From the NCBI GenBank assembly GCA_023515725.1, contig JALDTO010000208.1, positions 661,768 through 725,767 of the forward strand: DNA of 64,000 nt, written 5' to 3'. This DNA is from Amoeboaphelidium protococcarum X5 (taxonomy: Eukaryota > Fungi > Aphelidiomycota). A program made the position numbers and the translations under genes. Shown one piece after another: positions 47,768-52,560 of the stretch. Position 1 is the first letter of the stretch. Each line of letters opens with the position of its first letter. The notes below the pieces were generated by a model. The model had not been told where the DNA came from, did no database searches, and saw only the letters and a program-made list of their open reading frames with translations.

Positions 47768-48580
47768 ATGGACGCTAAAGGGCAATAACAGTAGAATCCG
47801 CAGTATCTTAATAGCAATCAATACGCTCCTCAGTAGGCGATTTCAGAGAAGCATCAAAATATTGGCGGAAATGTCTAGCAATAGTGGCAATAGCAAGGTG
47901 TCCAGTATGGTCTTCCGACGATGTAGCAATCTTAGAATGCACCGTACTTTCCACCGCAATATACAGCTGCCCCGCAAAATAATTTATTGATGCCTATTGT
48001 GGATGGAAAGTTTTGCATGCAACAGCAAACCTACTTCATCATGTAGAATATCTCTGGCGCTTTCTCTGGTCAAGATTACCAAGTTCATGATTAATTAGGG
48101 CGCCTATGGTTTAAGCTGGAGAGTTAAGCCTTTTCAGGCAAAGGTCTCAAGACTCTATTTGACTCTTATGGTTAGCCTGTGTTGAGCTTGAAGCGAAATG
48201 TTTTCAGCTGTAATATGAAGTATCGAGCTTACTTTCCTGGGAGTGACAACAATATAGTATTCGTATTTAATCCCAAAATATGGTCACTGACTCCGAAGGT
48301 GGAGATATTCTTGGGTTATAGCAAGGCTAAAAAGCCAGACTTTATGCTGAGGGGGGCCTTTGGGAATAGGGATTTTCAGATATTTGATATTCGCAATGGC
48401 AATGAGTTTATGCTGGCATCAGTTACCAAATAGAGACCTTGGGAGAACATGAGTGCATTTCTCTCTAGTGGAATATTTGGTCTTGACACGTACTATATAA
48501 CGGTGAATCCTAATGCTGACGCGTCTTTCGTTGTATGTCTTTGCGCTCTATTTGATTAGAGATTTGACCAAAGGAAATGA
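47768..48580 (+). CDS. LURP-one / tubby-C-like (LOR) protein, paralog 1
   Basis: Gln/Pro-rich N-terminus, PIVDGKFC, GQDYQVHD, DTYYITVNPNADASFVVCLCALFD. Confidence 0.82.
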
Positions 48581-48753
48581 TAATATTGAGATTTGATCGA
48601 ATAAAGTTTACATTTGTTTGCTTTAAATTCTTCATATTCACATGCGTGACAGATTCAACCCCTCAAATCGCGTGTATGATTCGCAAACTTTGGTTACTCA
48701 AAGATACTCTGTCAAATTTATTTAACAGTTCATGATATAGAATTGCTATAAAG

Positions 48754-51492
48754 ATGCACCTTGCCATTGTGTTTTGCTGGGTATAAATTGCCTTCTACAA
48801 TGCTCTTCCATATGAAAAGCCAGTATTATAAATTGGCGCCATTTTGCGTGATCGATACGAGGTGATCAAATTTGTTGGTGAAGGAGGCGCTGGTCATGTC
48901 TATTAAGCCCGGGATTTACTAAATTAAAATGATGTTGCAATCAAAGCGCTTGTTCGTGGACCTGTAGCTGACATTGAAGTGAGAATGACTCCAAGATCGC
49001 GAATTAATGGTAGATGTATATCAATATTGGATAGTTTCTATCACGGAACAGATGTTTGTTGCATAGTTTATCCTTTACTAGCTTGTGATCTTTAAGCTTA
49101 CGCGTCTTCGCGACCACTATCAATAAATGGTCTCAGACAAGTCGGGTATGATGTTGCTTTGGCTATCAAACAAGCATTGATGCAGGATATAGTCCAAAAT
49201 GATGTGAAAACTGAAAATATACTCGTGGAGGATAACCAGGTGGATGACGATGCAGATCTGAGAGTGCAGTTGTCCGACTTTGGTGTTGCTTGTAGAAATA
49301 GTGTTCGTAATTTTTGGCATCGTCCGACTCCTTATATTGAAAGTCCTGAAATAACTCTTCTTGGACAAGGTTCCGTCTAATCTGATATTTGGTCATTTGG
49401 ATTGCTTCTTGTACAATTGTACTAGTGCACCGACAGGGAATTATTGAATGGATACTGCGTTATCTCAAGACTTTATGAAATTTAAACTTTACTAAATGAG
49501 CGTGTGCCTGATGTCTATAAGAAAGAAGTGTATTGGAATTTGGTTACTTAATCTCATTTAATGACTGATGACGATGGAACTAAAGCAAATGATGTTTATA
49601 CATACTTCCAATTACTTTGGTTAAAGGCGCGACATTTGGTGGGTTCATATTTCAATTTGATTGATGAAGATCCACTATTCGACTCGGATGCAATGCGGCG
49701 TTTTAAATTTGAGATATAATATCCCTTTAAAGGAGGCTTGCAGAAAATTATGCCAAAGCAACCTGGAACTGATGCGGAAGATTATTAATTTCCCTAACAC
49801 GCGAAAATGGCCGGGCAATCTGGTCCCGAATTTCCCGCGATCGTTTGTTTTACACTTCAAAACGGAATCCTGAGGTTGTCAACTTTGTTTCTCTTTCATC
49901 ACCATCAATTTTGAATACAACACATCATTTTTATAATATGGATCTAAAGAAGAACGTCTTTGTCAAGTTTGATGTCAATGAATTAAAGCATGCTCGTTGT
50001 AAGAATAAGAACGGGTGTATTAAATAATGCAGTCTAATGTACAATGAGGCAAAAGTTTCGTGATCTTTTGGTTAAAACAGAAGACTGTCTGCATGAAGAT
50101 TGGCACAGATATGAGGAGAGCAAGTAGACACTTGCAATTCAATTTGGCACATTCTTTTTGGCCGTGCACAAATAAGACGGTGGTGGTTTCAAAGCAGGCA
50201 GTCTCAAAACTGGATTTCGTGCATTGACGCGTTCTTTGAAGTTGGATGTCCCTGAAGCTTATCCTAATTTTATATTGACACGACACAAAGTACAATTGTG
50301 GACTTTATTTCAAGTAAAATTCAAGAATTTAAATCAACTGGAAAAGGAGATCGTGATCAGGATGGGCGTTTTATAAGATGATGAAGTTTTGGCAATCATT
50401 GAGTCTTTGGATCCAGATACCTCTGGAGGATGACTGAGACTGTTCGCGTTTTATATGAGTCTGTTTAGTGCCTTCCGTGGTTGTCAGCGCGTCACTATTA
50501 AGCGTCAGTTCTTTAGAAACATATTATTGACAAATTAATCGATAGTATGAGACATGCCGTTAGTCTCTAAACCTCTGTAGAGTCTAAACAACGTTTAAGC
50601 ATGTAATAATCCTCCTCCTCGTATGTAAGCCTCTCGTCAGAGCTCTAAACTATCTTTAAATGCAACTGCGTTTCCTTTAGCGACTAAGATTACTGATTAT
50701 GGCTCTATTGCTCACCAACATCCTTAAATGTAAGTCCCTGGCCCCTTTTTGGCTCAAGATGATATGTTCAATGGTGAAGACTTTGTTACTGGCCCTATTC
50801 GCAGAACTTCTAAAAAGTCAAGATCTAATGGCACTGTAAATCGTCTATCTAATGTCCATTATCAAAACAGGAACAGTATACAAGATCATACCAACACCAA
50901 AAATATCTATGCTGGTCCAAATTACAGTTATCATTTCCATATCCATTATGACAAGTGAAAAGCACTGGGTCCTTTAACAAGGTTGTGATGCGGACTATTG
51001 ACAGACTGAACGTGGACACAAAATAAAATCAATGAGAAGTATGCATTGCCGTAGCAATTTTCGCTTAGAGTCTGGGAAATTAGTGGGTAACCAGCCGCTT
51101 CAGCAGAGGGCATCCCGTTTATCGCAGTCACGAGCGCTCAAATTACCAATTGTCACTCCCAGGGTCGTTCCAATTCACAGTTTAAGCTAATTGCACTCAC
51201 TACGCTCGAGCAATTAATGTTCACTATTACACTCTCTTCGCTCGAGTAATAGTTCAGTGCGAAATCTTCATTCGCTCCGCTCATTCAGATTTCTGAAACA
51301 AAAGGTGGCGCTCGCGGGCGATTTCACGGGAATTGCCCGCTGACGCGGCCAATTACCCCATTAGAATAGCTTTGCGATTTGATTTAAAAATGTCTCCGAT
51401 GGTTGCCTCAAGATCGAATCACTGTCGATGAAATATTGTAACATCCATTTCTACTCAAAGCGAAACATCGTGAAAGCTCATAATACTTTTGA
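48754..51492 (+). pseudogene. Ser/Thr protein kinase with signal-peptide-like N-terminus, interrupted by an insertion at 49790-51367
   Basis: 48754-49789: GEGGAGHV, VAIK, QNDVKTENIL, DFG, SPE, SDIWSFG. 51367-51492 in the same frame: QLCDLIQKCLRWLPQDRITVDEILQHPFL (subdomain XI). Read-through into the insert stops at 49914. Confidence 0.85.
49790..51367 (+). mobile_element. Internally deleted Crypton-like (DUF3504/ZMYM-type tyrosine recombinase) element
   Basis: ~50050-50520 encodes FFLAVHKQDGGGFKAGSLKTGFRALTRSL...SLDPDTSGG*LRLFAFYMSLFSAFRG (in-frame TGA 50431, first catalytic Arg 50476). Later catalytic motifs are absent. AAT at both junctions, imperfect inverted ends, hairpin array 51148-51293. 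Confidence 0.75.
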
Positions 51493-51663
51493 GGTTTTGT
51501 ACTGCGTAGAAGTCGATGGTATTATGCTTGAAAACTCTGATTGGCTTATCATTAATACATGGCAATATGTACTTCCATGATTATGATTTCTAGTATATAA
51601 AATCATCTTTATATTCATTCCACAAGATACAAGCATAAATTAGTGTTAACTGACGCGTCAAGA

Positions 51664-52560
51664 ATGGATGCTAAACTTCAGTATTAGAATGATGCGTATT
51701 ACATGCAGATGAACCAAGCAAATGCTCAAGGCAATTAAGTTTAACCGCTATACACTGCTCCCAACATTTATTAGAATCCAGGAGTATCTTATCAGCCTCA
51801 GTAATTAAATAGCATATAATAGTATCCAACAGTAATGAACCAAACGCCTGGAGTCATGCTAAGTGCTCCACCACCGGTTTCAATTGCCAAGATGCCGGTG
51901 ATTGATGCCAAATTCTGTATGGATAAGTAAACTACTTTCGTGATGCAAAATGTACCTATGCTGGGTCAGAGTTAGGACTATACGGTGCACGATTAAGAAG
52001 GACGAATGTGGTTCAAGTTTAGTAGCATCTTCTCATTTAGTGGCAAAAAGGCTCTGATTGACACCTACAATTAGCCTATTTTGCACATGAAAAGACCATT
52101 CTTCAGCTTTAGTGGTAAGTATCAGGCGTACTTTTAAAAGGGCGAAGAGCATGAAGTATTCCGCTTCTAACCTGTATTCTGGTCATGGATGCCGAAAGTC
52201 AAGATATTTTTAAAAGATAATTAGACACCTAATCCTGACTTTATACTGAGAGGCACCTATGCAGATCAAGACTTTGATGTCTTTGACGTCAGATCCGGCA
52301 GCGAGTTTCTGGTTGCCAAAGTAACCAAGCAAAGACCGCTGGAAAGTGTTTCTGCATTTCTCACCAATCTGGTTCTGAATGTAGATACGTATTATCTGAC
52401 AGTAAATCCTAACGCCGACGCTGCGTTCATTGTCTGTCTTTGCGCTCTGTTTGATGAGAGATACGATATGAGCAATCATGGTCATGGTCATCACCACAGT
52501 TCCAGTCATCGCCGTCATCATCGTCATCATCGTCGTAGACGTGGTGGCCGTCGTCGTTGA
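51664..52560 (+). CDS. LURP-one / tubby-C-like (LOR) protein, paralog 2, with His/Arg-rich tail
   Basis: Starts MDAK like paralog 1. PVIDAKFC, DTYYLTVNPNADAAFIVCLCALFD, tail HGHGHHHSSSHRRHHRHHRRRRGGRRR. Confidence 0.82.

Follow-up and report, generated by a model that had tools for sequence, protein, structure and literature searches.

A protein kinase gene divided in frame

The window considered here is a stretch of 64,000 nucleotides from the alga-parasitic aphelid Amoeboaphelidium protococcarum, and it lies on contig C207 of an assembly of 23.6 Mb in 346 contigs. Aphelids are the sister lineage of fungi. Long open reading frames (ORFs) in the window are closed by TGA only, with TAA and TAG read as glutamine, and translation with genetic code 6 reveals a protein kinase gene on the forward strand that is divided by an insert. 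The 5′ part of the gene (48754–49785) comprises 344 codons with no TGA and encodes kinase subdomains I–X, with the motifs GEGGAG, VAIK, QNDVKTEN, DFG, SPE, and DIWSFG in its translation. The 3′ part (51364–51492) begins with the target 4-mer GAAT (51364–51367) and encodes subdomain XI and a tail, followed by a TGA stop at 51490–51492. The kinase frame (48700+3n) runs from the Met at 48754 to ...TDAEDY, ending at 49785, and continues as EQLCDLIQKCLRWLPQDRITVDEILQHPFLLKAKHRESSQYF on the far side of a gap of 1578 bp (3 × 526), where the same frame resumes. The first-pass annotation had described the kinase as split in frame with both halves free of stops, and this description is borne out by the code 6 translation, by a contig from the source reads that spans both junctions, and by an uninterrupted copy of the gene (on contig C146, described below) that shows no gap at the junction when aligned. 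That annotation had also placed an end of the kinase ORF at HPFL; the ORF in fact goes on for 16 further codons.

The kinase was searched as stop-free pieces, and the sole full-length comparison is the alignment to the uninterrupted C146 copy. A 94-residue piece (49096–49377) matches the Pfam family Pkinase (PF00069) with 27.6 bits (E = 2.3e-6), below the whole-protein cut-off of 31.7 bits as the query was a fragment, and a match in the PDB is to STK33 (E = 3.4e-5). Furthermore, the general motifs GxGxxG, VAIK, D-x-K-x-x-N, DFG, and SPE, together with the Arg of subdomain XI, can be read directly from the sequence. The interrupted gene is very probably a single-exon protein kinase gene that is one of two diverged copies (homeologs). 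Reading through the insert, the kinase frame ends 42 codons into the element at a TGA (49912–49914), and the interrupted copy would yield a product that lacks subdomain XI.

The junctions can be placed to the base. The trinucleotide AAT, previously noted at both junctions, is indeed present at 49787–49789 and 51365–51367; however, all empty-site contigs and the other copies of the element place the breakpoints at 49785|49786 and 51363|51364. The AAT repeat is a three-of-four microhomology between the start of the element and its target. Consequently, the restored junction is not the DYQQLCD that had been derived by collapsing the repeat, as the actual empty site reads TAT|GAA TAG and encodes D-Y-E-Q-L-C-D.

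The inserted element and its relatives

The insert occupies 49786–51363 on the forward strand (1578 bp), starts with TAATTTCCC, ends with CCCCATTA, and is exactly skipped in the empty-site contigs of four runs. It is described here as a non-autonomous, Crypton-like element of the tyrosine-recombinase type, with a single ORF remnant and neither a reverse transcriptase nor long terminal or split direct repeats. The boundaries of Crypton-class elements are notoriously hard to define. In this family, the true ends have in common just TAAT and ATTA. The first four bases of the element, TAAT (49786–49789), match three of the four bases of the target 4-mer on its 3′ side, and the same four bases are seen at the junctions of the window copy, of three further copies (L011, L010, and C157), and of loose ends in run X7. 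Comparison of the empty site (TAT|GAAT) with the filled site reveals no target duplication. The 3′ flanks at four sites are GAAT, GAAT, TTAT, and TAGT (the last from an X7 loose end), and each matches TAAT at three of four positions; by our own arithmetic, which assumes a match probability of 0.3 per A/T position, the chance of such microhomology at all four sites is approximately 5e-5.

The element also contains imperfect subterminal inverted repeats of approximately 30 nucleotides, located by local alignment on the left at 49812–49843 (CGGGCAAT..CCCG..AAT..CCCGCGA.CG) and on the right at 51309–51340. The pattern CGATTTCACGGNAATTGCCCGC is confined to this right-hand repeat and the C157 copy. 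When the opening 100 nucleotides are aligned to the reverse-complemented final 100, z is 3.9 relative to shuffled sequences, and the corresponding value for L010 is 4.7. Inverted repeats of this kind are reportedly absent from classical Cryptons. Near the 3′ end are two hairpins (51190–51214 and 51226–51250, together repeat family D1) whose stems, ATTGC and ATTAC, differ while the loop motif ACTCACTAYGYTCG is conserved. This motif occurs six times in 23.6 Mb, in every case within these elements, and control motifs do not occur at all.

The element is present at other loci. In the assembly GCA_023515745.1, listed in a preprint as Amoeboaphelidium protococcarum (10.64898/2026.07.21.739728), BLAST searches identified full-length copies whose alignments cover the insert completely (bases 1–1578). 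These copies, L011 (1557 bp, 95.8% identical) and L010 (1606 bp, 91.4% identical), reside at unrelated loci, and their surroundings are non-coding or unrelated. All full-length copies start with TAATTTCCC, end with CCCATTA, and lack a target duplication. Copies in the window's own assembly are few: a single further one on C157, which is diverged and shortened (76% identical at its 3′ end), and a fragment on C235. The insert is therefore a discrete mobile unit. Since one sister length is a multiple of 3 (1557) and the other is not (1606), it is coincidental that the length of the window copy preserves the frame. When a 66-residue piece of the insert was searched with HMMER against 1.84 billion proteins, the matches included two proteins, P0001 and P0003, that represent two copies of the element, both from GCA_023515745.1; three other matches were rejected as spurious repeat proteins, and the search made no connection to named Cryptons. 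No usable match to the 66-residue piece was obtained from the ESM Atlas, and two scans of JGI metagenome contigs, the first with P0003 and the second with the 3′-end pattern, found nothing.

The coding capacity of the element is limited to the remains of a recombinase. An N-terminal remnant (MDLKKNVF..., 49938–50012, forward strand) matches residues 2–26 of the ORF in the C157 copy and is out of frame with the remainder, which extends from 50044 to 50673. Within the latter, 50050–50517 is homologous to the N-terminal (QRICH1/core-binding-like) domain of tyrosine recombinases and includes the first catalytic Arg (codon 50476–50478). The catalytic core is absent after this residue, such that the catalytic R-H-R-Y set is encoded neither by the window element nor by its sisters, all of which are kept only up to the first Arg. 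The window remnant is 62% identical to the L010 ORF. The N-terminal frameshift is present also in L010 and L011, and both it and the loss of the catalytic core are common to all three family copies, while the window copy additionally has an in-frame TGA (50431–50433) and local frameshifts. Translation and alignment thus confirm that the recombinase is frameshifted, carries a TGA, and lacks the C-terminal catalytic motifs, as the first-pass annotation had stated. Since the core is deleted in all copies, the element is non-autonomous; the frameshift and core loss shared by the three copies indicate that the family spread in this non-autonomous state and needed a recombinase in trans.

The link to tyrosine recombinases was established through a relative in the same genome. 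When the better-preserved L010 ORF (P0003) was used as the query, an intact ORF was found on contig C249 that spans 533 codons from the first Met and whose only internal TAA and TAG codons are read as Gln. The window remnant aligns with residues 39–194 of the C249 protein in blastp (E = 3e-18, with E = 7e-30 for L010), and the alignment stops just past the first catalytic Arg. The N-terminal domains of the window family and the C249 recombinase are 31–42% identical. The C-terminal half of the C249 ORF matches Pfam Phage_integrase (PF00589) with 30.1 bits (cut-off 27.1, E = 4.7e-6), and inspection by eye identifies AFRGQEH, EKNNQGG, HTIRATG, and GHRS, as well as a tyrosine. The N-terminal piece of this ORF has QRICH1-domain and core-binding-domain clusters as its closest neighbors and a weak match to PF25561 (E = 0.007).

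The Crypton call of the first-pass annotation is upheld through this relative and its passing of PF00589. The DUF3504 assignment on which that call had been expected to rest was not obtained: PF12012 matched neither the insert pieces nor anything genome-wide, a negative that is weak as the controls were also silent. Stop-free pieces of the insert matched no Pfam family, and a genome-wide profile search with PF25561 found nothing. In these searches, the catalytic half of the C249 protein is recognized by the general PF00589 model only.

The C249 element itself is about 2.0 kb in length, contains a single ORF, and is related and autonomous, with its own deletion derivative on C155. The loop motif ACTCACTAYGYTCG is common to it and the window element, and the two elements have different termini. 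A family of 810-residue recombinases, represented elsewhere on C207 (about 845.4–847.9 kb), was considered as a partner and rejected, as it is dissimilar at both the protein and the DNA level and does not contain the motif. The search for an autonomous partner proposed in the first-pass annotation ended with no cognate master bearing the same ends in the window's genome.

Uninterrupted kinase copies and the history of the insertion

The site was examined by aligning Logan contigs, which drop rare variants, from four runs to positions 48000–52500. In the source sample (run X4), a 1962-nucleotide contig bridges both insert junctions with 0 differences at a depth of 76.4. All four runs also have a contig that unambiguously joins 49785 to 51364 and skips the 1578 bp. 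The depth of this joined form is 58.7 in X4; 52.2 in X7, another sample with the same organism label; 12.3 in X8, a biofilm metagenome in which the contig (1918 nucleotides) is about 3% different from the window; and 450 in X5, a run with an RNA-like depth profile. Presence or absence of the insert is polymorphic. In run X5, whose haplotypes could be separated in part, a contig over the right junction stands at about one-ninth of the depth of the empty form, which we list among the points against the explanation given below.

The source of the empty site in the window's own sample is apparent from its variants. The sole empty-site contig of the source sample has 51420 C>T and 51465 A>G, which are the bases of a second kinase copy on contig C146 (199085–200109); the window copy is distinguished by T at 49717, C at 51420, and A at 51465. 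This copy is 88% identical to the window kinase, is uninterrupted at the site (...GAAGATTAT|GAATAGCTT..., encoding EDYEQLCD), and crosses the insertion junction without a gap in an in-script alignment. A 51-nucleotide intron (49419–49469) was considered as the cause of a frameshift in C146 and rejected, as it would remove conserved kinase residues and a contig of run X5 follows the genome collinearly across this interval. The dS between the two kinase copies is approximately 0.21–0.30, and the neighboring genes are diverged to the same degree; therefore, the window kinase and C146 are the homeologous pair in a genome that is either doubled or a hybrid. This reading fits the published assembly of A. 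protococcarum (24.7 Mb, 13,180 genes) in comparison to that of A. occidentale (13.6 Mb, 7,568 genes) (PMC10608142). Since its variants are those of C146, the empty contig of the source sample did not arise by excision from the window copy. The joined molecules for which the first-pass annotation had suggested searching thus exist, but the one in the source sample belongs to the other homeolog. Uninterrupted versions of the kinase are separate alleles or homeologs, found in the same genome (as C146) and in other strains.

Pairwise dN/dS between the window and C146 kinases is 0.14–0.43, and of eight listed positions at which the window has a base seen in none of the four other alleles, seven are synonymous. 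These values indicate that the window copy was under constraint until recently, and the insertion is, with good confidence, fairly recent. In all likelihood, the insert is an ordinary segregating (hemizygous) insertion polymorphism and not a programmed gene switch. Taken together, the evidence strongly favors the insertion, in one of two kinase homeologs, of a 1.58-kb element that derives from a Crypton-type tyrosine-recombinase transposon and is itself non-autonomous.

It is proposed that a circular form of the element, joined as ...CCCATTA|TAATTTCCC..., would be the intermediate in this insertion. A recombinase acting in trans would recombine the circle with a target of similar sequence, ATTAT|GAAT, and no base would be duplicated or lost. 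The first-pass annotation had named the recent insertion of a trans-mobilized, non-autonomous Crypton as the simpler of its two readings; the tyrosine-recombinase homology, the discrete common ends, the lack of a target duplication, and the polymorphism agree with that view, while the DUF3504 check failed. We also count the absence of a Pfam match in the insert pieces, the subterminal inverted repeats, and the lack of a cognate master against the explanation.

Insertion does not preclude later loss, and an occasional, unregulated, precise excision by a related recombinase acting in trans, with no biological role, is conceivable though unlikely. Integration by tyrosine recombinases is chemically reversible, an intact related recombinase is encoded on C249, and the C249 element has the same hairpin-loop motif. 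Against this, no such molecule is present among the contigs, from which rare variants are dropped, the termini of the C249 element are different, and the N-terminal domains of the recombinases share just 31–42% identity. A related and rather improbable view, drawn by analogy, is that the insert could be a live non-autonomous Crypton that is cross-mobilized by the C249 recombinase, with the ACTCACTAYGYTCG hairpin loop serving as a folded-DNA site in the manner of integron attC; such an element could revert and restore the kinase.

Programmed excision, in which regulated removal of the element would activate the kinase during a particular life stage as in the skin and nifD elements, is very unlikely. 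Since the insertion is seamless, a recombinase that cut the element out would leave the precise wild-type ORF behind, and the kinase halves are still stop-free; however, any recombinase-mediated excision of a seamless insertion restores the ORF, which is a property of the mechanism and not evidence of a switch. In the source sample, the single contig with an empty site represents the C146 homeolog and bears the SNPs of that copy, and the site is empty in the inherited sequence of other strains and the metagenome. Moreover, a working recombinase is not encoded by the element, the searches turned up no cognate enzyme, and the sister copies of the element are located at non-coding or unrelated sites with lengths that are not conserved modulo 3. 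No loose end among the contigs of the four runs, which drop rare variants, reads as the circle junction for which the first-pass annotation had suggested searching.

Removal of the insert from RNA as an intron, in the manner of an introner-like transposon, is less probable still. The length of the insert is divisible by 3 and the joined form is abundant in run X5, whose depth ranges from 0 to about 10,000 between neighboring genes. The ends of the insert are TA..TA rather than GT..AG, though, and the same joint is present in DNA runs. In run X5, the joined contig (depth 450) has a T at 51420, and the right-junction contig that emerges from inside the insert (depth about 51) has a C; therefore, the joined and insert-bearing forms are different alleles and the insert-bearing RNA of that run is unspliced. 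The earlier suggestion of a switch by excision or splicing is not supported. An assembly artefact, with the element chimerically joined into the kinase, has a negligible probability given the independent 1962-nucleotide source contig across both junctions and the right-junction contig in run X5, and nothing was seen that speaks for it.

Comparison with known elements and implications

Cryptons encode a tyrosine recombinase only, insert without duplicating the target, show short repeats of microhomology, and are known to have non-autonomous derivatives (PMC3212892, PMC13465315). The window element is similar to the non-autonomous Cryptons CryptonI-1N1_RPro and CryptonA-1N1_OL (Kojima and Jurka 2011, PMC3212892) in that it is an internal deletion derivative that keeps the transposon ends; they also have in common the lack of a reverse transcriptase and a target-site duplication, short microhomology, and a (here presumed) mobilization in trans. 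In contrast to those elements, it possesses imperfect subterminal inverted repeats and 3′ hairpins with a conserved loop, has no cognate master in the genome searched and no DUF3504 match, and resides in an aphelid host that reads TAA and TAG as Gln. Elements of the CryptonA/DUF3504-QRICH1 type (PMC3212892), including Glomhopper (PMC13465315), resemble the C249 element in its single ORF and its N-terminal domain nearest to QRICH1 clusters, while the missing PF12012 match and a catalytic half matched by PF00589 only set it apart. The window element fits the description of a Crypton, bar the subterminal inverted repeats (z of about 4) and the absent DUF3504 signal.

The skin element of B. subtilis and the nifD element of Anabaena are comparable in that ORF halves remain intact around an element whose site-specific excision would be seamless. 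Those elements have their own working recombinase, are fixed in the species, and excise in a terminal cell type. In contrast, the recombinase of the window element is dead, its insertion is polymorphic, and uninterrupted alleles are inherited in the same and other strains.

These findings turn a tempting story of an excision-restored gene into an ordinary one, namely the hemizygous insertion of a transposon in a genome where most genes are present as two diverged copies. They also provide a Crypton-type element in aphelids whose ends are resolved to the base, for which both the empty site and sister copies are available, and in which seamless insertion with just 3–4 bp of microhomology is shown. 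Seamless insertion with short microhomology is reportedly what the Goodwin model predicts. Finally, the hairpin-loop motif common to two Crypton families that are otherwise dissimilar in DNA is a candidate cis site.

A hairpin-loop motif near the 3' ends of two Crypton-like families

A search of the 23.6-Mb genome for the motif ACTCACTAYGYTCG gives six hits, against zero for the controls. The sites lie at window 51190-51250, within the 1578-bp insert that splits the kinase, at the C157 locus carrying the other copy of its family (C157:21380-21432), at C249:843577-843590, and at C155:463044-463092. All are close to the 3' ends of Crypton-like elements and fall in hairpin loops, the stems of which differ in sequence (ATTGC, ATTAC, AATTAATTG). 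The motif is common to two Crypton-like families that share no other DNA similarity. In the C249 and C155 copies, the loop is in inverted orientation relative to each other.

The C249 element and other Crypton-like sequences

The C249 element is a compact Crypton-like element of ~2.0 kb (C249:841588-843608; L019:5589-7609 in locus coordinates) that encodes an intact 533-aa tyrosine recombinase (ORF L019:5736-7334) with PF00589 above the cut-off and a QRICH1-like N-terminal domain. The element is apparently autonomous, and a deletion derivative of it is present at C155:463060-464157. The 1.8-kb stretch 5' of the C249 element (C249:839807-841597) lies within a long kinase-like ORF and has a second copy, 96% identical, 8 kb downstream (C249:847890-849693). 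Another repeat family, with at least six copies of 77-91% identity (C212, C214, C207:870727, C264 and others), starts immediately after the element.

A long recombinase ORF of another Crypton family is located on C207 (C207:843500-850000, L026; ORF 1649-4354). This ORF has no similarity to the studied element or to the C249 protein by blastp or blastn, and did not show up when the genome was searched in six frames with PF00589.

At L011:1857-5723 in A. protococcarum GCA_023515745.1, one of the sister copies of the studied element is ~130 bp from a Ty1/copia-type retrotransposon, for which gag, rve, and RVT_2 are annotated on the record.

The interrupted kinase and its homeolog

In sequencing run X5, depth is 3,500-10,000 over the gene upstream of the kinase (window 48000-48300), 450 over the kinase (compared over 48302-49785), 0-12 over intergenic 51473-51774, and 9-51 on contigs bearing the insert. 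The X5 run looks like RNA from good expression of the uninterrupted allele and weak expression of the interrupted one.

The kinase carries a hydrophobic leader, MHLAIVFCWVQIAFY (window 48754-48810), and its catalytic loop reads QND instead of HRD (window 49180-49200); both features are kept in the C146 homeolog. This uninterrupted homeolog (C146:199085-200109, L007; opposite window 48754-49785) is itself damaged at two points. The frame is shifted within the kinase domain by a 1-bp deletion opposite window ~49441, a gap also present in one source-read contig, and VAIK has lost its 'AI' to a 6-bp deletion. The kinase has no further close paralog, the next best being 42% identical. Consequently, the kinase may be non-functional in both copies of this strain, the interrupted copy and that on C146.
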